Positions 2,746 to 41,842 of a stretch of DNA of 64,000 bases are shown piece after piece. Under the pieces are notes generated by a model that made no database searches, had not been told where the DNA came from, and worked only from the letters and a program-made list of their open reading frames with translations. A program made the translations under genes and the position numbers. Source of the DNA: Schizochytrium sp. TIO01 (Eukaryota; Protista; Bigyra: Labyrinthulomycetes); the NCBI GenBank assembly GCA_004764695.1, contig SMSO01000032.1, positions 8,340,483-8,404,482 on the forward strand, in the 5' to 3' direction. The stretch's first letter is position 1. Each line of letters opens with the position of its first letter.

Positions 2746-4030
2746 TGCTTCAACGTCTGACTGCCCTGAGGCCTTCTCATCTTCAGGATCAACCTTGCCT
2801 GAAGGCGTGTATTTGAGGCTTTCGATACCCGGGTTGCTCATATTGCTCTGCCTTAGAGTCTCTTAAACGGATTATCTTTGGTATCCGCTACAGTCGCCAA
2901 CGAAGTTATGCCTTTGGCGATTCTTCGGGCTGTGTCAGCTGAAGGTTCGATGGTTCGCGCAAATTGAGACGAACTTGGGAAGCCTGGTTTACCTTGAACT
3001 GCCCTTTCAATCCTGCGTCAATGATGCTGCCACCACTACCTTTTTCTCCAAACGACGACTTCCCGAGTCTAAAGATCCTAAGGAGTTTTGCGCGTTCGCG
3101 TTTCTGCTTTGCAAACTGATCTCAGTAGCGAGATCAACTAACTTCGGCACTATTGCAAAGTCGAATTAGGATTTGATTGACTTTTCTAAGGTTTCCAAGT
3201 GGACATTCATTTTGTTTCCCAAGCTATAATACGAATTTAGCTAGTAATTCTATTTCCGATCGATCAATCTGATCTTTTAAAAAGGCTATCCAGGAATTAT
3301 TGCAATCACTTAGGTACCTACCTAGTACCAGACTAGTACTTATTAACCAGAATTACTTTAACGCGCAGCACAGTGCTTCGATTAAGTCCTAAGTTGTCAT
3401 TCATTCAAGTCTATTAGTATTGCGCAAGACCTGACGATCAACGTTTTGGTCTGCACTTTTTGAAGTCAAACTGTTCTGCTGTAGTGGAGAGTTGCGTTTT
3501 CATCCAATCTACTAGTTCACTATCCAGAAGCAACAACCCTTTAACATACAAGTCAAAATAAATTACTTCATATATGGAATGAGACCACGATAATCGTAGG
3601 TACAAGAAGTTAACGAACGAAATACGCAGAAATCTCGAATGTCAACATTGCTTGAAAACTACTCCTCATGTCTATTAAATACTCTAGGTGCTGCTCTCGG
3701 TATCAGAAACTGAATAAATACACACAACCATTAAAACCTAGAATAGATAAATCAATAATACGGATGGCTTCTTTTTTTAGTATCTCTTGTTTTACTGTCT
3801 GGCATCCACTAGGTTTCCAAAAAGTAGACAAGGGAATATAAATAAATATCTTCCTCATATTTAGTGCTTTTAGATTATATAGTCTAAGGTAGCACAAAAT
3901 GCAGGTGGGTTAATCATGACCTCTCCTTTAAATTGCTAGGCAGGGTCTAGATCTTCAGAAGCTTGCATGAGAAAGCAGCACACAGAAAGCTCAGTGATTT
4001 GGTTAAAAATGAATATAAACTAGTAACTGA

Positions 4031-7000
4031 TTATGACGAGGCTGCGGCGCTAGCTGCAATAAGACGTTCTAAGCGGTCACGAAGAGGAGACGCCTCTTCT
4101 TCAAGAGCAGCTGCTGTTTCAAAGTCTTCTTTGTCCACTGCGTTGGCGATGTCGGCATCTAATACATCGATCGCAGCTTGGAGTTCCTCCAAAGTCATGT
4201 TTTCTTCTTCATCTGCTTCTTCTTCTACTTCCTGCTCTTCCTCTACTCCCTCCACTCCACGTTGCTCAGCGTCATCTGCAGTATCACTGCCCTTGGAAAC
4301 CAAGCCTTCATCGTCATCCATCTCCCCGTCGTCACTCTTGCGGACCACATCTTTTTCACCGTTGACAGAGTCCACGGCTGCATCTTCATCTGCACTACCT
4401 GTCCGAGCATCGTCTGTGGCATGGTTCTCGTCCCCGTCTACAGCTGAACCCTCGTCAGCGCTTGTGGCATCCTGGTCTTTCTGATGCAGTTGTACCTCAC
4501 CGATATCTTCTTCACTTGGAAGCACCGCAAGTGATTCGTCACCACAAATCTTCACAGAGATTGCCTTAGCCTCTTCCTCACAAGCTGAAGCCTCAGCTTC
4601 CAAAATAAAGAGCACAGTTTCACCAAATGTATTCGGTTCTACTGATCCGGACAAGCGTACTTCAGCCTGTGTTGACCGCAGCGAAAGCCGTTTCGCATTG
4701 AGGGATGAAAGGGTGGCACGATTAACACTGTCTTGCATACCCTTGATGGCCTCAACAAGTTCCTTCACCATCTCAGCCTTACTCTCAATCTGCTCCCGAA
4801 TTTCATTCGACTTGCTCTTGATCTCATCTATTTCTGCTTCTACAGCCTCCTTCTCAGCGGTAACTTCCTTGATGACTGTATTAAGGCGACCAGCTTCCTT
4901 GAAGTTGCGTGAAGATACAGCCAGGCGCTTTTGTTCGTTGAGGGCTGGCAATTTACTATCAATATCAAATTGGCGACGACCAAGATCTGTAAGTTGCTGT
5001 TCGAGCTCTTGAGCTTTACGTGAGTTGAAATCAATATTTTGGCGAGCCACGTGAACGTCATCCTCCATCTTACGCATCTTGTTAGCTGCTACAGCTGCTT
5101 CATCAGCCTCATTATCGTCACCATCACCGTTAGTATCCAGGCCATCATGGCTCTGGCGCAATCTGTTCGCAATCTTTTCTAAGATTGTGAGCTGAGCATT
5201 AATCTCGGCAGCGGACTGTTCTAGCATAGCAACCTTTTCCTCAGTTGTTTGTTTACGCTCCTCAATTATATCACGAGAAGTCTGAATTGCCTGAGCCCGG
5301 GCCTCAGCGGCCTCTTGTTTCTGAATAACGTGCGAACGGCGATCATCAAGCTCATTAAGGCGAGTTTCATACTTTGAGCGGACAGCTTGAATTCCAGAAT
5401 TCACTTCGTCTAGGTGCGTCACAAGTCCATCGCGCTCCTCGCGTTTTTCTGCAAGCTGGCGCTCAAGTTCCGCAATCTCGTCATCTACGGCAGCTATTTT
5501 TTCTTCCCAGCCTTGACGCTGTTCACGAAGGTCTACAGTACCAGCATCAACTCGCGTATTGATCTGATCAAGCTCTCGCTGAGCCACCTCAAGATCGCTT
5601 TCAATACCTTCCATGTCAATGCGCAAGAGATCCTCCTGCTCGTCAAGCTCACGTGTCTCCTCGGCAGCCCTAACGGCAGTTGACTCAGCAAGCTCCTTCG
5701 CCTTGGACGACTCCTTCTTACAGCAGTCGCTCAAAAGGTCAGAAATAACATCAATACTTTGGACCTGGTCGTTAAAAATCTTTGCCTTTTGCGTACGAAG
5801 CTCGTCTAGCCGTCTCTTCAAATATAATTTCCGGCTATCAACTTCGTCAACAGACCTTCCAACAGCATCAATCGTACGCTGGAGTTTATCAGCCTTCTCA
5901 AAATCTTCTGCAGCAAGAGCAGCATTTTGTTCCTCTTCCAACGCCTTGACGCGCTCTGCGAGATCATGCGATTCCTCCGCATTGCGCTCAAGAGATTCCA
6001 AAGTCGATGCTGTCTCATCGTTGACACGTGCAAGACCCTTGGAAAACTGGTCCGCACCCCTTCGAAAGGCACGCAAAAGCTCGCCAAGTTCACCAAGATC
6101 AGAATCATCTTGTTCACTCTGTTTGCTTTGCTGAGCTTCTTTCTCAGCAACCTGAACGGTTTTAGGCTCCTCCTTTGTAAGACTACTTCTAGCATCTTCA
6201 CTTTCAGTAGGCTCATCACCTTTAGCTGATTCAATCGCTGATTCAGAAGCTGAGTTGCTCGTCTGTTGGATGAATGAAAATCCTCCAGCAGTTGAAGTTG
6301 ATGATGGCTTATCATCGTCCCGAGGGTTATATTCATCCCTGTACTCCTCAACAGGTGCCATGGCCTCATGAATTGGGCCGATGCCATCTGCGTTGACGTT
6401 ATCATCATCGTCGATGTCTTGCTCCTGGTCGATATCCTCCCCAACATGGCTCGGTGCGAGCGAGCTCGTTTCGGACATTGCTTCTGATCCTCCGTCATAT
6501 CTTGCAAAACCAGGCTTCCTGGAGCTGCGTTTCTTCTTGATCTTAGGTACTCGGATCACAGCCGTCGGTGCAAGAAGATCAGCATCGGCGCTAGCAGCCA
6601 TTGCAGATGCTAAGGCACTAGCACTGTGGTCACCATGGACACTTGAGCCCGAAGCCTGAGATCCCTCAAATCCTTGGCTGTGGTTTTGGTTCTGAGTTGA
6701 GTTGTTCACCATAAACGAAAATGAAGATGGGGGATACGCAGTAGATCCAGTTTCTGAAGAAGCGTAGGCGCCACTATCTTCGCCAAGATCAACATTATCG
6801 ACTGAAGAGTTTGCATTCGACGAGCTTGAGAGAAAACCAAATCCAGAGGTCGACGTAGATGTCACATGCTTGTCCTTCGTGGCCAAGTAATCGCCATCTT
6901 CTACACCGCTGATCTCATTTTGAAGTCCTTCAGGATCTTCATTACGGTCATAATCGTTGTCATAATTGTTCTCTGAATTGCGGCTAACAAGGCTAGCTCC

Positions 7001-33900: not shown

Positions 33901-36126
33901 TTATCGTTGTGTCACGTTTATGCGGTACAGAAACACAAAAGGTTGGGAGGTCTACGAGTAGCTTCTACACAAGGGCGGGTGGTAAGCAGCACTTATTTAC
34001 ATCGTTCTGGCAGAGATGACACGTAGAGATGAACTTCCTGGGACGCACGGGAGATAATGATAACTTCGATTCGGAGCCAGCGATCATCATGATGGTCGTC
34101 ATTATGCCTACGATTGCGTTCTGCAAAGCGCGATGACGAACGAAGCAGCACCAGCACGGCCTCTGCGACCATACTCACAGGGGATAGACAAGAGCTAGCG
34201 TAACACAGATTATGACGTTGGCTGGTTCACAAGCAGCGACTCGCGGCGTCACGGAGGACACTGAGATCTGCGTTGCTTCTCGTCTCGCGAATACGTGCGG
34301 ATGTGCCTATAGGGGAGGAGGTGGCGATCTACGAGGAGGACCGTGAAGTTGGTAAGCATGGCCAGAGACCTTTCTACGCAGGGTGACTATCTAGCTAGCT
34401 ATTGCAGCATGGACCTTTGTTTGCGTCTCTTCGAGTCTCGGCATCGTTTCTTCCATTCTTGGACTTGGTACAATCAGGGAAGCGTCCGGGGGAACCTAGC
34501 GTATGGACGATGTGACAACATCTTTCTGGTGGTGAGAAGTATGCAGATTGCCAACGCATCTATTGACTGGTGACGTCCGACGGCGGAGAGGTGCATTTCG
34601 CTCTCGTGCCGTGGACAATGACGTCGTGGGTCATCGTTTGAGATGTCACGGAGACCGACACGCAACCAAAACCTCATCACCACTTCACGCAAGAGAACTT
34701 GGCTTGGCTTCAGCTCATGGGTCTTGGTTTTGACTGATTCTTTTGGCTTCATTGTAAGACTTGAGAGAATAACTACCTTGGATTAATTTTGCACCATGTC
34801 TCCAATAGATATAGTCTTCAGCGGATTTGCATTATCCTTCTTTGAGGATGAGGACCTGCAACAACTTCAAACTATGCTTGACCTACAGCCTAATGCATCT
34901 GCACCTACTCCGAAAAGGGCACCGGCACCCTCTCCTCGAACGTTTTTTAGTAATTTGTTGCAAGGTTTGCAAGGTAAAGCAGCAGAATAATGTACTTTCA
35001 TGATACAATTTACTGATTGAATTCGCTGTATATATAACTGCATGTGTATGTAGGATTCAGCCCTATTAACAAATTATCATGCACGGCTAAATTAAATTTA
35101 GATGGGGGCAGAACCATTCAAGTTTCTCAAGTAATAATCAAGCCTCTCACACAATTGCGGAGCTGCAGCAGAGATCATCTTGTGAAAGTGTATAAACACT
35201 ACAACATGCAATCTAGAGGAGTTAGCATCACTGTGACAAATTTTGCGTAGAGCTGCGTACTGGTTCTTCAAAGAAGACAACCCTAGACACAAAGGCATGT
35301 AAGCGATATATGCACAATTAAGATTTTCCGTTTGTGCTCCTGCGTTTCATTTTCAACCAATTCTTTTCCATGTTTATTTTATTGAGTGAATAGATTTCCT
35401 CAAGCGATAATATGAACAGTCAAACATACTCTTTAGCCACTGCAGTAGTATGAGTCTGCCGTCAAAGTGATTGAACTTCTTTTGGTATATCTCTCGAAAC
35501 AGAATCCGGGAGGTTTCTGATCTAAACTTCAACTTCGCGATCACAATAATCAATTCGTTGACAATTGTATTGTGATCAATGAACTGGATTGAAATCTTCA
35601 TCACTCGAAGCTCAAGTTTCTCTTCTCGCTACCCCGGAACCCAGGATATGTACCTCTTTTCGATGGTCGACATAGTTAGTATCTCTACTACAATGCTATT
35701 GTTTTAGCACTTCCGAAGGATATTTTCTTATCCCTAGCTATAAAACCCAGAATATTCAACTTCAACAAAAATTCAACTCAATAAATCAAACAACAGAGAT
35801 TCTCTCAAATGATAATTTCATCCAATGCATAGATGCCACACGACCCATCATTTCTCAATCAAATAACCAAACCACAGCCCCCGCTTGCTCTGCCTAAACA
35901 CTCACATGCGAGTATTCTTAGGTACTTACTGCACCATCACGTCGTAAATAGGTTTTGTAGGTAGGCAAGTAGGTACTACTACGCTATGAAATTTGTTGCA
36001 CTGTACCTGTGAAAACGTTAGAACCTAGACAACCTCCGAATTGAGGGTAGTGCCTATTCCATACGAATGATACATCATAATAATTTAGGTCTTTGTTAAG
36101 GACTGGATGTTAGGTAAGAAAATGGC

Positions 36127-36474
36127 ATGGCCAAGGAACCACCAAACACTGCAAGTGGAGCAAACCTTCAATTCAAATTATCAAATTACTTCAACCAAAA
36201 GTTTGGTGCCTCGGCAAGTGTCCTTCGGGTGCTTCCTCGGAGGCAATCGCATATACGCAAGTGACGACGTTGAGGGCACCTATGGCTAGGGTTTGTTTTG
36301 GCGCCGGCGAGCAACGCAGCACTGACTGTATCATTTTCTACGCCAGAGTATATCCTCTGCCAAGCAAAAACAGAATTTCAAATGCCAGACGAATAACCTT
36401 CAGCGTGCCTATCCAAACGCTACAAAGACTTCGGTAGAGAGGTCAATTTCAAAAGGCCGGGCTTGCGCGCCCTG
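36127..36474 (+). pseudogene. tnpA: IS607-type serine recombinase (TnpA), 5' half, frameshifted
   Basis: Read across frames: VLRVLP/GGNRIYASDDV (HTH wing, cf. R.PGG.RLY); IIFYARV (TAC at 36339), then a 2-nt TA insertion, then SSAKQKQNFKCQTNNLQRAYPNA; then KDFGREVNFKRPGLRAL (36424-36474). Matches the IS607 TnpA pattern YARVSS.KQK.DL.RQ...L...YP....D.GSG.NFKR.GL. Confidence 0.88.
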
Positions 36475-36810
36475 CCGAGATTCTCCGCAAGCTTGCTCTT
36501 TGGCTCTGTGAAAACTACAGTGTTATCCTTTTGTCTGAAGGTGAAACCTCAACAAGTGAACAACGTGGATCAAAGTTAAGACAGCTGGAATGATGTGTCG
36601 TTCAAGCGCTCATTCACAAAGCCGAACTTCCCCTCTGCCAGTGGTATAAACTGTTTTTTTTAATCAAGAGAATTGCACTTTCAAACCATGAAATGAATGA
36701 ATGTGGTACTATTCACGACAAGCTCGGAACATCCTCCCAAAAAATGTAAACACGTCGTTGATCGTAATATCCACGACGCCAGAGGCATCCTTTTGCGCTG
36801 CCTACCCATC
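36474..36810 (+). pseudogene. tnpB: Fanzor2 / IS607-TnpB RNA-guided nuclease, C-terminal part, disrupted
   Basis: AEILRKLALWLCENYSVILLSEGETS (36474-36551); IKVKTAGMMC (36569-36598); QALIHKAELP; QENCTFKP*NE (from 36665); ECGTIHDKLG (36699-36728); CKHVVDRNIHDARGILLRCL (36745-36804). Fanzor2 pattern: HRKLA.WLCENY..ILLP.FET..KTAR.M..L.HKA..E.YTSKTC..CG.IH.KLG..C....DRD.N.ARNILLR. Confidence 0.9.
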
Positions 36811-36930
36811 CAAGGACACAATTTAAGAATTGCCTTTGAGTCGCGGGGTAATTTTATCCAGCGATTGGACCTTATTGGCCCCACCTTGTGACCATCGGAA
36901 ATGCAAGTTTTGCAAATATTATTGGTTGAA
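36805..36930 (+). ncRNA. Candidate remnant of the omega-RNA scaffold / element right end
   Basis: Positional inference only: TnpB/Fanzor omega-RNAs overlap the 3' end of the ORF and run to the element right end. Structure not verified. Confidence 0.3.
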
Positions 36931-38104
36931 CTCCAAGAGATGCCTTCTGCAGTAAATATCACTTGGCGAGGTCCGCGGGAACCTCTTCAGCGAACCACTG
37001 CTTCAGCTACCATAATCCACCCCTCCCATGCTCCATGCTGGAATGCTTGCCTGGTGGCGAGCGGAGTAGCCAACCGCTGTGCACGACGAGCCGAAGCCAG
37101 CAGCCATCCATCTTGGCGCCGCATGCGTGGCCTTTCCCCACTCCGCTCACAGGTGGTCTAAACAACAGCGGTAATTTTTCATTATATGGCAGGCAGATCT
37201 ATCACCCTGTCTATCACTTGGAGGTAGGTAGGTACATGAGCATCATCTTCAAGTTCTTGGTTGGGAGGTTCCCTTTGACTTTCAACCTGCCTCCAAGCCA
37301 AGCTGCGAAGCTGTGAGAATCTGTGCTGCTGCTGCCTTTCAGAGGGGAGGTGCCATAGCTGGTGGGCCAAATGATTGGATGATTCTGATCGGCGGTCTTT
37401 TGATCTCTGATTCAACAAAGCTCGTCGTCATCGTAAGATACCACATCAAGCAAACTCTGCGAACTTCCAACACATTAGGATATATACACTCCACCCATGG
37501 TCAGCCTTGACACAACAACCCATGGGTCACCCTGGGGTTGCTGTTATGTACGGCAGTAGAGCGGTGTGCGCCGTCGCTTCAATCTGATAGGCATCCTCTG
37601 GGTCATGAACTTTTAACATGCAGTGATACAGTGGGGTGCGGAGCTCATCGTCAAGGAGCGGTGTGCAGTACCTTTCCGTTGGTGTATTAGAGACGATGGA
37701 TGAGAGCTCTGTAGATTGTATGAAGAATCAGATGTGCTTGACGAAATGCTCACATGAAAAAAAAAAGTTGTTGCTTTTTCTTTACTTTTTTTGTTGTTTA
37801 GTTGTTAATTTTGTTAATTACTTGATTGGTCTAATTATAATAATAGTTATGACAGTTCGTTCGTTCGTTAGTTAGTTGCCTATGCTATGGTTAGATTGCG
37901 GTTTAGTCTTACTTTTGTCGTGTTTGTTTGAACTGGAATGATTCAAATTCACTATATCTTCATCGATCCCAACGTTCCCTCGCTCCTCTGTTTGGAGCCT
38001 CGCCGCAGTGCGGGCAAGCAGGATCTCCGTTGCGTTGCCTGTTGCTCCCTCTGTTTCAGTGCTGAGCTAGGTGATTTCCGCGCGGTTGCGCTCCGGATGG
38101 CATC

Positions 38105-41100
38105 ATGGAAAGCCTTCGAGCGATTCATGGGTATGGGTCGCTGCGAATGACGCCCTCGCTCGTGGACGGAAATGATATTGATCTTTTTGTAGACCTGCTC
38201 GATGCTGCTGTTGATGGGAACCTGAGCCGAGTGGAAAGCCTCCTGAAGGTACTTGATGTGGGCGCCGCGAGCAGGCTCGACTTCAGGCGTAACCAGCCGA
38301 CCTTTGGCGAGTCACCTCTGCACAGGGCATCTACGGTTGAGATTGCAAAGGCACTCATCGAGCATGGAGTTCACCTTGATTTGCAAGGTGCCGTTGGCCA
38401 GACGCCACTGCACACGCAGGTCAATAATCCTGCAGTTCTGCAATACTTGCTCAAGCGAGGTGCGGGAGTGGACGCAATGACCGTCGACCATTCGACGCCG
38501 TTGCACTGGGCCGTGGTGCAAGACTGCGCCGAGTCTGTGCAGATACTTCTAGCAGCAGGAGCTAAAGTGGATCATCAAAACGATAGTGGAAATGCGGCGC
38601 TGCATATGGTATGCTCGCTGGAAGTTGCGAGGATCCTTGTGGCGAGTGGGGCAAGACTAGACTTGATTAATAAGGATGGCCAAATCCCGCTCGAAGCGGC
38701 GGCCTCGAGACCCGAAGATGATGTTCACCTCCAAGTTGCAACCTACCTACTCGATGTATCGCATAGCGCAAGTATGAGAGCATCTAGCAGCTTCAATATT
38801 TTTAGACCAGAGTTCGACGGATTGCAGTCAGCGTCGAGTGAGATCGGACCTGACGACGAACACCAGATTCCCATTGATGAACCCAACACAGAAGGCACTG
38901 ATGGAAGCAACGGCATTCACAATAATAATAATAATGCTGCAAGCACTGGCAATAACGAATCGGCAACGGGATCAAGAATGGGTAGCATTTCAGAACTAAG
39001 ACGCTTGAGTACAGGTGAAGAGGTCCGTTCTGTACTTAAGAAGGTTGATGCTCGGGAGCGATGGCGCATTGTACGCCAAAGGGTACTTAAGGGTGAACTA
39101 CGTGGGGCTGCAGGAATCGGTGGTAGAGTACCGAAGCGCCTGCGGTTTGCATCCGATGTTGCGAAGTTTGGCCGAGCTGCAAGTACAGCAAGCTCGTGGA
39201 GCGGTGGCGATACTATGCCTTCTTTGCTTCAGGCACGAACGGATGAGTTCTACTATCGATTCTTTGAAGTCATGGTTCGGGACCGACCCAAACTCGCACT
39301 TCGAATGCTAGATCGCCAACGTACCTTTTTGTTCGCTCGTGGTAATGACAAAATATACTCATATGATCTCCTGCTCACTGGTGGGCCCGTGAGCAGCAAC
39401 GAAGTTCTGAACAAAATGGTACGGGACGAAAGGCATGAGTTGATATCTCACGAAGTTGTGCAGTGGGTTTTCAACATCCGATGGATACTCTTTACCCGTG
39501 AAGCACTGCTCTTTGAATTTGCTGTGCACTGCATTTTCATTGGAACATTTCTTATCACGACTCTCTATGGCGAACAGAACTTGCAGAATTGCTTTATCGA
39601 AGCTTTTCATCTCTTCACACGTGGTCCAACTCCTGAGCGGAACTCTCATCTTATCCAGGCAACCATGGAGCTGGTACTTTGCGTTCTCAACTTGCGGTAT
39701 GTGATGCGGTATGCTGTGGAATGGCACATGCGCGAACGTCTCACGGAGGTCTTTTCTAATCCTTCAATTGATGTTCTGCCGTATGCTTGTGTAATGGTAG
39801 AACAGGTCATGCGTTTGTCAGTAGTGGCAAAATTTGACGATACCTGGGTTGCTGATCTTACAAGTTTTGTATCAGCTATTGGTGCTGTACTCTTATGGAT
39901 TCGTTTGCTCAGTTTTGCTGAGGGCTTTGAAATTATCGGCGTGACAATGTGCACAATCCGGCGCATGCTTCAGGACATTGGTATTTATCTGGTGGTTTTG
40001 CTTATTTATGTTACTGGGTTTAGTCACGCTATCGCATTGATCTTCCGCGGTTCTGATTCTTCCGTGTACGGAACAGTTTACAACAGTTGGATTACGCTTT
40101 ACTTTTTCGTCTTTAATCTCGATGTTGGTGCTTTGGATGAAGAGCCCACAGCCTTCCGAAAGTATATGGGCTATCTCTTAATTGGCATTTACATGGTCGT
40201 TGTTGCACTTGTTATTCTAAACGTGATTATTGCCATCATGACCAACACCTTTGATGAGATTCAACAAAACGCTAAAGAACAATGGCTCTTACAGCGCGCT
40301 CGACTCATTTTGACATATGACATCCGTGAGAAGAGTCTTAAGAAGCTTTATAGAGCCCTTTGCTTTCGTCGTGGACGCTGGCTTAATGGCACGAACCCAG
40401 TGGCTGATGAGGCCTTTCCCGAGCTCCCACGAAAGAATATTGTTGTCGAAAAGGGCACCGGTCAGGTCGAGGTCCAAGTTCCTGCAGAATGGTTGCACGC
40501 CGTCAACCTGATTCGCCGTACTTCTCCTACGTACAATGAGTTTCGCTATAAGCTCTTCCGTGGTTGGAAGCAGTTGCGAAGATCGCCATCATTCTTGTGG
40601 CCTGAGCTAAAGGATACGACTGAGTTCTTTGACCGGGTGGAGGCTGACGAGCAACGAATCGCACAGCAAGCTCTCAACAACGAAGCCATGGCAATCAGCC
40701 GCGAACGCAGTATGACGGGCATGGGCGTAAGTGAGAGTGAAGAGGAGGACGAAGATTCGGATTCTGAAGAATCAAGTTCAGAAGAGTCAGGCTCTGAAGA
40801 CGACGAGTCCAATTCTGAAGAAGATGAGGAGGTTGAAGCTGTTAACAGTCAGGACGATCTTGCTTTTGAAGACGACTCTCGGCATGGAGGTTCTCGGGCT
40901 CCTCTACTTCGTGGTGCTACATCAGCTCGCATGTACAGCAGCGGCTATAGTTCTGCTAGTGGTAGTAATGGAAATGGAAAGTCAACTACACGTCAGCGTG
41001 GTGTTTCCACGGCGTCACATTCTTCTGCAGCTTCGTCCTCTGAAGGAGCGCATATCAGGCGATTCAATAGCTCTGATAATTCTGCCCTGCGCACTGGCGT

Positions 41101-41842
41101 GGAGGATGAACTGGTGTATATTGGGTTCTATCAGCGCAACCCGAAGCGCATAGCTGCGGATCGTGTTATGCAAAGTGCTATGGCCTTGCAGCGCGCCATC
41201 CCGCGACCTTCTTTCGTGGCTGCAGACCTTTCGAGCGCAGCAAGTTCTGCGCGCATGGAGTCAGAAGATACCACGCCTGCAGATATTCCAATAGAACCTC
41301 AATCACCCAGATCCGGGCCTGCGAGTGGAGATGTGGCTTCCAACCCGGAGAGTCTCACTTATTCTATGTCTGCTCCTACAATGGGAGGAATTGTACGCCG
41401 CCGTGGTAAATCATTTAAGCGGCATACCACAACTTTAGAAGGCCAAATTCAGCACGAAGTTGAAGATATGCAAGATGTGATGGCCTTGCACCATACTCTT
41501 CCAACTCATACTAGCATGGCAGAAGATACCATGAACTTACGCAATGAGGCAGCTATTGAGCATTTAACAGGTCTTGTTGTTCGCCTATCTGATCAGGTGT
41601 CCGCGTTGGAAGATAAAATCACGTCAATGGGAGCGAGTAAGCGATCTCCCCCAACATTGCAGTCTCCCCCAATTTTCGAGCTTCCTCCACATGCTAATGA
41701 AGAGCAAGATCTATCGAACGCAATGGTCGGTCCTCCTCGGACAAATATTATGTCTGAATCTTTGCAAGACGAGGATGACAATCAGGCCCCACCACGCTTG
41801 AACTTGTCATCATCTTCACTTCACAACATGCATCATGAATGA
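38105..41842 (+). CDS. Ankyrin-repeat TRP-family cation channel
   Basis: About 5 ankyrin repeats (ESPLHRA, GQTPLH, STPLHWA, GNAALH, GQIPLE); 6-TM region with S4-S5 LLWIRLLSFAEGFEIIG..IRRMLQDI and S6 ILNVIIAIMTNTF; TRP-box-like EQWLLQRARLIL; C-terminal coiled coil. Confidence 0.92.
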   Translation: MESLRAIHGYGSLRMTPSLVDGNDIDLFVDLLDAAVDGNLSRVESLLKVLDVGAASRLDFRRNQPTFGESPLHRASTVEIAKALIEHGVHLDLQGAVGQTPLHTQVNNPAVLQYLLKRGAGVDAMTVDHSTPLHWAVVQDCAESVQILLAAGAKVDHQNDSGNAALHMVCSLEVARILVASGARLDLINKDGQIPLEAAASRPEDDVHLQVATYLLDVSHSASMRASSSFNIFRPEFDGLQSASSEIGPDDEHQIPIDEPNTEGTDGSNGIHNNNNNAASTGNNESATGSRMGSISELRRLSTGEEVRSVLKKVDARERWRIVRQRVLKGELRGAAGIGGRVPKRLRFASDVAKFGRAASTASSWSGGDTMPSLLQARTDEFYYRFFEVMVRDRPKLALRMLDRQRTFLFARGNDKIYSYDLLLTGGPVSSNEVLNKMVRDERHELISHEVVQWVFNIRWILFTREALLFEFAVHCIFIGTFLITTLYGEQNLQNCFIEAFHLFTRGPTPERNSHLIQATMELVLCVLNLRYVMRYAVEWHMRERLTEVFSNPSIDVLPYACVMVEQVMRLSVVAKFDDTWVADLTSFVSAIGAVLLWIRLLSFAEGFEIIGVTMCTIRRMLQDIGIYLVVLLIYVTGFSHAIALIFRGSDSSVYGTVYNSWITLYFFVFNLDVGALDEEPTAFRKYMGYLLIGIYMVVVALVILNVIIAIMTNTFDEIQQNAKEQWLLQRARLILTYDIREKSLKKLYRALCFRRGRWLNGTNPVADEAFPELPRKNIVVEKGTGQVEVQVPAEWLHAVNLIRRTSPTYNEFRYKLFRGWKQLRRSPSFLWPELKDTTEFFDRVEADEQRIAQQALNNEAMAISRERSMTGMGVSESEEEDEDSDSEESSSEESGSEDDESNSEEDEEVEAVNSQDDLAFEDDSRHGGSRAPLLRGATSARMYSSGYSSASGSNGNGKSTTRQRGVSTASHSSAASSSEGAHIRRFNSSDNSALRTGVEDELVYIGFYQRNPKRIAADRVMQSAMALQRAIPRPSFVAADLSSAASSARMESEDTTPADIPIEPQSPRSGPASGDVASNPESLTYSMSAPTMGGIVRRRGKSFKRHTTTLEGQIQHEVEDMQDVMALHHTLPTHTSMAEDTMNLRNEAAIEHLTGLVVRLSDQVSALEDKITSMGASKRSPPTLQSPPIFELPPHANEEQDLSNAMVGPPRTNIMSESLQDEDDNQAPPRLNLSSSSLHNMHHE

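Follow-up and report, generated by a model that had tools for sequence, protein, structure and literature searches.

IS607-type transposons that carry Fanzor2 have been known from eukaryotes and viruses since 2013, and the nuclease activity has been known since 2023. Described examples are ISvMimi_1 and ISvMimi_2 of mimivirus (ApmFz2, which is L79; PDB 9b0l), ACa-1 and ACa-2 of Acanthamoeba, and NlovFz2 of Naegleria (Bao and Jurka, 2013, PMC3627910; Saito, 2023, PMC10432273; Jiang, 2023, PMC10530073); association with an IS607 TnpA is a hallmark of Fanzor2 (PMC3627910). IS607 elements move as double-stranded DNA, which TnpA excises and integrates. The guide RNA of TnpB and Fanzor begins in the 3' end of the gene, crosses the right end of the element, and enters the flank; the nuclease cuts the emptied or homologous site, and the element is copied back (Saito, 2023, PMC10432273; Jiang, 2023, PMC10530073; 10.1101/2023.11.20.567912). 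A proline or glycine at the RuvC-II position combined with an alternative glutamate is the signature of Fanzor and "pro-Fanzor" proteins (Yoon, 2023, 10.1101/2023.08.09.552727; Jiang, 2023, PMC10530073), and the Fanzor papers describe a disordered N-terminal region with an NLS. Derivatives available for comparison are the PATEs of IS200/IS605, the TnpA-less IStrons (10.1101/2023.11.20.567912), and TE-N2_CMe, which shares an end with a Fanzor1 element (PMC3627910). No paper was found that names Fanzor or IS607 in thraustochytrids, and thraustochytrids are absent from the accessible part of the supplements of Saito et al.

The locus considered here lies in a thraustochytrid (stramenopile) nuclear genome, in a 64-kb stretch of DNA that was analyzed as a whole and is called the window. 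Positions ~36003-36940 of the window are very probably a copy, now dead, of a short non-autonomous element derived from an IS607-type transposon carrying Fanzor2. Full-length paralogues in the same genome share with the giant-virus and protist IS607-Fanzor2 elements the order and orientation of tnpA followed by Fanzor2, the lack of terminal inverted repeats, the DPG motif, the RuvC-II proline, the glutamate placed six residues ahead of the zinc finger, and an N-terminal stretch rich in lysine and arginine. They differ from those elements in their host, and the window copy differs further in being a deleted, dead derivative that encodes neither protein. Like the PATEs, the IStrons, and TE-N2_CMe, the derivative is short, keeps its ends and fragments of genes, and has a copy number well above that of its autonomous relatives; unlike them, it is of eukaryotic IS607/Fanzor2 origin, has one internal deletion that fuses a 5' fragment of tnpA to a 3' fragment of Fanzor2, and keeps the whole 3' region in which a guide RNA is expected.

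The element in the window

A sequence-only reading had flagged positions 36127-36810 as a hidden IS607 tnpA and Fanzor2 pair on the + strand. The place is right, but the true element is wider and is made up of the following parts.

36003..36940 (+): probable whole short non-autonomous IS607-Fanzor2 element, ~938 bp, from a 20-copy alignment and blastn to the full-length element
36003..36121 (+): non-coding left end, GTACCTG TGAAAACGTTAGAAC..., corresponding to the left end (114 nt) in the full-length element
36122..36473 (+): tnpA remnant, residues 1 to ~131 of 232 (tblastn E 5e-17, frames 1 and 2)
36150..36164 (+): motif TGCAAGTGGAGCAAA, repeated as TGCAAGTTTTGCAAA at 36902-36916 (repeat search)
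36473..36477 (+): deletion junction, where full-length positions 510-1714 (1,205 bp) are absent (blastn)
36477..36826 (+): Fanzor2 C-terminal remnant, residues ~367-492 of the 492-aa core (tblastn E 2e-17, frames 3 and 1)
36827..36940 (+): non-coding right end, presumed omega/fRNA scaffold remnant, a role suggested by the homologous intact 3' region
36841-36864 (+): hairpin in the right end
36902-36914 (+): palindrome TGCAAGTTTTGCA in the right end

In an alignment of 20 family members with their flanks, column identity is 0.8-0.9 inside the element ends and ~0.5 outside. The left boundary is uncertain by ~7 nt (~36003-36010). At the right, where the element reads ...CTCCAAGAG(A) at 36939/36940, window position 36940 corresponds to the last base of the full-length element (blastn). 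The window copy aligns to full-length positions 43-509 and 1715-2205 with the junction at window 36473|36477, and the deletion has taken the rest of tnpA together with Fanzor2 residues 1 to ~366, RuvC-I included. The first description, of an element merely read across frameshifts, is replaced by that of a member of an amplified, internally deleted (non-autonomous) family, in which the junction is present in 20 of 20 copies.

Homology was established by searches with the intact paralogues. With intact TnpA and Fanzor2 as queries against all 64 kb, the sole tblastn matches fall here (E 5e-17 and 2e-17), the next-best matches in the window having E values of 0.2 or worse; in blastn, the left part of the window copy matches the full-length element at E 1e-51 and the right part at E 1e-18. 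Pfam has no match for the stop-free pieces of the window copy alone, and the copy is absent from the PF07282 profile matches of the genome, so homology is shown through the paralogues and not through profiles. The sequence-only reading had proposed both kinds of search and had named a lack of similarity as its refutation; the similarity is significant for both parts, and the profiles are silent on the window pieces.

All of the motif strings that had been reported on the + strand are present. They were recovered by translation of 36100-36900, distributed over the three + frames and broken by stops, and include FLGGNRIYASDDVE, SSAKQKQNFKCQTNNLQRAYP, VNFKRPGLRAL, RKLALWLCENYSVILLSEGETS, KTAGMMC, LIHKAE, ENCTFKP, ECGTIHDKLG, and CKHVVDRNIHDARGILLR. 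Both remnants are on the + strand with tnpA first (tblastn).

The tnpA remnant holds the wing of the MerR-like HTH (FLGGNRIY) together with the beginning of the serine-recombinase domain (..SSAKQKQ..LQRAYP..VNFKR); the recombinase "core" recognized earlier is therefore genuine, yet it amounts to just the N-terminal ~131 of 232 residues. Its sequence is distributed over three frames and is interrupted by two in-frame stops; 32 nt of the HTH are missing, and indels of 7, 32, 4, 2, and 10 nt distinguish the remnant from the intact element (DNA alignment).

The Fanzor2 remnant spans the RuvC-II region (RKLALWLCENYSVILLSEGE) and the relocated glutamate codon. A glutamate at 36668 beside the zinc finger had been claimed, and GAG is found at 36668-36670, aligned with the glutamate of QESYTSKTC in the intact protein; the canonical RuvC-II proline position is a serine in this copy. 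The shifted-glutamate layout had been taken as particular to Fanzor2, and although the layout is there, it is also found in Fanzor1 and in some bacterial TnpBs (Yoon, 2023, 10.1101/2023.08.09.552727; Jiang, 2023, PMC10530073). The C-terminal Fanzor2 motifs are likewise present, but as just the last ~126 residues, the RuvC-I DPG having been deleted. Traces of the zinc ribbon survive as NECG at 36696-36707 and KC at ~36745, and the RuvC-III "RD" has become "RN" (36763-36768); zinc ribbon and RuvC-III are degenerate (HEMNECG, KKCKH, DRN), with zinc ligands lost. Several frameshifts, one in-frame stop, and more than 10 indels separate this remnant from the intact element, and many of the indels of the window copy have lengths that are not multiples of three. 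The window copy now encodes nothing and is itself an ordinary one.

Full-length relatives in the same genome

Intact copies had been predicted elsewhere, and they are found in the same genome. A search with the internal 1,205 bp, which the window copy lacks, gave 23 full-length places at 81-100% identity (20 of them at 92% or more), most with both frames open and all sitting in different flanks. The same search returned ~20 old fragments at 65-77% identity, showing that old full-length relatives of the right age exist. In a whole-genome profile search there were 36 matches to PF07282 (TnpB zinc ribbon) and 29 to PF00239 (Resolvase), many of them paired ~1.3 kb apart in open frames of ~660 aa and ~240 aa. 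Six full-length copies are 95-99% alike over 2,205 bp and have unrelated flanks, and the span of this alignment defines the reference element, L046:2756-4960 (G000:C32).

The 232-aa ORF of the reference reads ...FPGGKRIYACDDVE...IYARVSSAKQKEDLERQVGDLQRAYPDA...GSGVNFKRQGLCSLL..., and its long ORF ends ...HRKLALWLCENYRVILLPKFETSKM...VRMMCRW...ALIHKAE...CQESYTSKTCNECGTLHHKLGASKVFQCPNPKCNHVADRDVHAARGILLRYL; these are the intact versions of the strings read in the window. Its tnpB-family gene follows tnpA and is read in the same direction. With 144.9 bits, reference TnpA (2870-3565) exceeds the cut-off of 110 for NF033518 transpos_IS607, the match covering profile positions 4-187 of 187; its score for PF00239 is 72.5 bits. 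A repeat search found no inverted repeat joining the two ends in the reference or in the window copy, and inspection by eye of the flanking DNA of 6-18 full-length copies revealed no target-site duplication. That TnpA excises and integrates the full-length family is indicated indirectly by the 23 full-length places with their different flanks.

The intact Fanzor2 matches PF07282 (51-55 bits) and PF12323. Its RuvC-I DPG (ALDPGVRSF) is invariant across nine aligned homologues; the canonical RuvC-II position is a proline (VILLPKFE); the glutamate lies six residues before the zinc finger (QESYTSKTC) and aligns with the ApmFz2 residue in NEYLTTKTC; and the C4 ribbon and RuvC-III read CNEC...CPNPKC...ADRD. 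Among solved structures the best relative is the mimivirus L79 Fanzor2 (9b0l; E 3.7e-19), with the catalytic positions aligned, and no Fanzor1 or ISDra2 TnpB chains appear at E values up to 10. The intact paralogues thus show the tested defining features of an IS607-type element that pairs a serine-recombinase TnpA with Fanzor2, which upholds the proposed source of the relic.

The comparison with bacterial systems gives likeness and difference. As in bacterial IS607 elements (H. pylori IS607, ISXfa1), TnpA lies above the NCBIfam IS607 equivalog cut-off, and as in "pro-Fanzor" TnpBs (Yoon, 2023, 10.1101/2023.08.09.552727), the nuclease matches guided_TnpB, over residues 198-610 at 94.7 bits, just under the cut-off of 100. 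In contrast, the intact Fanzor2 falls far below the cut-off for bacterial IS607_TnpB (62 versus 350 bits), resides in a eukaryotic nuclear genome, and has a ~190-aa N-terminal extension with an NLS-like stretch. The closest database protein to the intact family is a 91%-identical transcript in a marine-protist transcriptome set (MMETSP); the next homologues, from metagenomes and a dinoflagellate, do not exceed 48% identity. The tnpA/Fanzor2 gene pair is also present on many giant-virus contigs.

A TAA at tnpA codon 167 of 232 is common to six young full-length copies (L024, L025, L027, L029, L030, and L034, on G000 contigs C32, C5, C36, C13, C31, and C4) whose identity to the reference is 94-98%. 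In L029 the overlapping Fanzor2 frame has a single stop; in the other five it has none. A truncated TnpA seems to have accompanied the spread of this sublineage.

Ends, repeats, and the presumed guide-RNA region

The right end of the window copy is presumed, by analogy with the intact element, to be the remnant of a guide-RNA scaffold. Set against 200 shuffles, the 3' 281 nt of the intact element has the better fold in every case (z = -3.96), which is consistent with the IS607/Fanzor guide-RNA model. Two 3' hairpins are common to the old and young families, with 82.5% of cells paired compared with 29-46% in slid controls; their covariation is weak (20/500 shuffles, for a structure specified by hand). 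RNAalifold gave no useful consensus for 21 right ends, in which decayed copies and indels break the alignment, and Rfam had no match to the intact and window elements at E values up to 1.

The repeat pair of the window copy occurs in the intact element too (L046 2905-2919 and 4922-4936). A 15-nt motif, TGCAAGT(GGA/TTT)GCAAA (TGCAAGTnnnGCAAA), is found once near each end and is conserved between the old short and the young full-length families; its left copy falls within a highly conserved coding stretch, PNTASGANL. The motif may be a repeat to which TnpA binds in both ends, a role for which it is a candidate.

At the left end of most short copies, GTACCTA precedes TGAAAACG (window 36003-36009; flanks L002-L020), and the young family has (CA)GTA TGACAAAAA at the corresponding site. 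GTACC may be part of the element, or it may be a preferred target or TAM-like motif.

Neighborhood and age of the insertion

The relic sits in an ORF-poor stretch, 1.16 kb upstream of a channel gene.

38105-41842 (+): 1,245-aa ORF, the first gene downstream of the relic; ankyrin repeats at the N terminus and a TRP-like channel domain of the ion-transport/polycystin type

Public runs with the relic stretch carry at least nine organism labels and come from 13 studies. Contigs of other strains carry the relic with its own flanks, as in a 3,576-nt contig over 34500-37566 that has four differences; the same insertion with the same flanks in other strains shows that the insertion is old and fixed.

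In a rival reading the short element has acquired a use: the host, or the transposon family itself, would for instance draw guide RNA from it, or it would act as a regulatory or transcribed element close to the channel gene. Of four runs, three have uneven, RNA-like depth and cover the relic, contigs from these runs span the relic and its flanks continuously, and the 3' hairpins are still recognizable. None of the runs is on record as RNA, however, and decay has gone as far in the window copy as in its siblings, with indels along its whole length; 17.5% of cells have broken hairpin pairs, the covariation is not significant, and the RD motif and zinc ligands are lost. Co-option is accordingly given little chance, and the copy is regarded as a dead one.

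Just upstream, at 34500-35800, contig depth in three RNA-like runs rises to ~1,300, far above that at the relic and at the downstream channel gene. This ORF-poor segment may be an unannotated, highly expressed transcript.

The short family and its origin

A whole-genome DNA search with 36000-36950 gave 51 matches at 68-78% identity to the window copy (245 first-look candidates, 40 of them scored). The short family measures ~0.94 kb and has at least 40-50 copies, 68-78% alike, on many contigs and in mutually unrelated flanks. All 20 of the copies fetched fuse full-element positions ~489-524 to ~1708-1745, joining TnpA residue ~131 to Fanzor2 residue ~367 with an alignment uncertainty of ~+/-15 nt at the junction, and the 32-nt HTH deletion is common to most short copies (family profile). 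Short copies are 63-73% identical to the young full-length family; each one, the window copy included, lies ~10-15% from the column majority, a profile that served solely to measure divergence. The shared deletion and similar divergence point to a single deletion derivative, amplified in one old burst and then left to decay. Old full-length fragments at ~70% identity are present in the genome (search with the internal 1,205 bp), among them G000:C31:1840927-1841943, C7:183979-184837, and C13:1239458-1240457. For the short family, neither empty sites nor recent insertions were seen.

The ancestral element, ~2.2 kb long, would have carried a left end, the tnpA serine-recombinase gene, Fanzor2, and a right end with a guide-RNA scaffold. 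After the internal loss of 1,205 bp, the ~0.94-kb product would have consisted of the two ends enclosing tnpA codons 1 to ~131 and the final ~126 codons of Fanzor2. With both ends in place, this product would have been mobilizable in trans, the TnpA of full-length relatives excising and integrating it, as its structure and copy number suggest. It multiplied long ago to at least 40-50 copies, which have decayed neutrally since, and its retained 3' end may once have yielded a guide RNA usable by Fanzor2.

It is very unlikely that a full-length copy was instead deleted in place here, the other short copies having arisen by separate deletions at a hotspot. Recurrent deletion between short repeats can happen, and the ~+/-15 nt of slack in the junction alignment leaves some room for such a history; against it, the junction is shared by 20 of 20 copies along with the second, 32-nt deletion, and the copies are about equally distant from one another (68-78%) and from the young full-length family (63-73%), which fits one old burst.

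That the relic belongs to an integrated element of a giant virus or another virus, and is not a cellular transposon copy, is highly improbable. Many giant-virus metagenome contigs are among the closest non-thraustochytrid relatives of both Fanzor2 and TnpA, and the thraustochytrid Aurantiochytrium is reported to host endogenous viruses. Every copy, however, has sharp ends 0.94 kb apart and unrelated flanks, the copies are scattered over many contigs, and the neighboring gene is an ordinary ankyrin/ion-transport channel; no viral hallmark genes were seen flanking the relic among ORFs of at least 130 aa at 28-46 kb. Chance resemblance of the motifs across frames, unrelated to IS607 or Fanzor, might appeal to the lack of Pfam matches for the window pieces alone and has a practically nil probability, being refuted by the tblastn (E 5e-17, 2e-17) and blastn (E 1e-51) matches to intact paralogues and by sibling short copies that pass the PF07282 cut-off (C35:838669, C30:9208677, C30:1139173).

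Overlap of tnpA and Fanzor2

In the reference element the Fanzor2 frame (2994-4850), which is the +1 frame of tnpA, has no stop across the whole of tnpA (2870-3568). The overlap was followed in 17 non-redundant loci from this genome and giant-virus contigs (also L052-L102). The +1 frame has no stops in 10 of the 17 loci and 1-8 in the other seven, compared with 5-31 in the +2 frame; synonymous shuffles of the tnpA codons have a mean of 0.5-10 stops, giving a Fisher combined P of 2.6e-16 for an open +1 frame. The first ATG in the Fanzor frame lies between -26 and +139 nt from the tnpA ATG in 16 loci and at +265 in the remaining one, with no intervening ATG between the two starts in 13 of 17. 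The alternative-frame translation aligns with the N-terminal ~190 residues of Fanzor2 homologues that have 38-48% identity and lengths of 618-692 aa. Amino-acid conservation in the overlap frame is weak (median 61 bits for +1 versus 45 bits for +2), and shared substitutions in young copies have no synonymous excess in the Fanzor frame.

On this evidence the Fanzor2 gene may start close to the tnpA start and not after tnpA, with its disordered N-terminal extension and NLS-like stretch made by overprinting of the transposase gene, a tentative proposal that falls somewhat short of an even chance. A single 5' end could in that case serve the translation of both proteins, by leaky scanning for instance. 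In the reference element, candidate start codons for Fanzor2 are the ATG at L046:2994 and those at 3372/3399. The overlap is not mentioned in the Fanzor papers searched; a partial tnpA/tnpB overlap in some bacterial IS607 elements is noted in one paper.

In the bacterial control, the overlap is absent from two IS607 loci and present in two loci that come from fragmented assemblies. The claim that the overlap is a eukaryote-specific adaptation was dropped because this control is ambiguous, and the idea is kept as a hypothesis.

Tiny contigs (0.6-2.1 kb) in bacterial MAGs encode Fanzor2 and TnpA proteins 38-51% identical to the thraustochytrid ones. The same long overlap is seen in the MAG loci L103 and L106 (labeled Hydrogenophaga), L104, and L105 (labeled Gammaproteobacteria). 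These contigs may be eukaryotic or viral DNA binned into MAGs.

Significance

The relic alone matters little, but it marks a genome in which a Fanzor2/IS607 family can be studied in its natural host, a culturable thraustochytrid. The material comprises about twenty young full-length copies, most with open frames, and an older burst of short derivatives that retain their ends and the presumed guide-RNA region. The intact Fanzor2 is, judged by its sequence, one more candidate for a compact RNA-guided nuclease. If Fanzor2 does begin close to the tnpA start, overprinting would suit a two-gene element of bacterial type to the cap-dependent translation of eukaryotes, and the short dead family would have kept exactly both start codons and the guide-RNA end. 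For the role that Fanzor plays for eukaryotic transposons, autonomous members, non-autonomous members, and members in which tnpA only is broken give natural contrasts within one genome.
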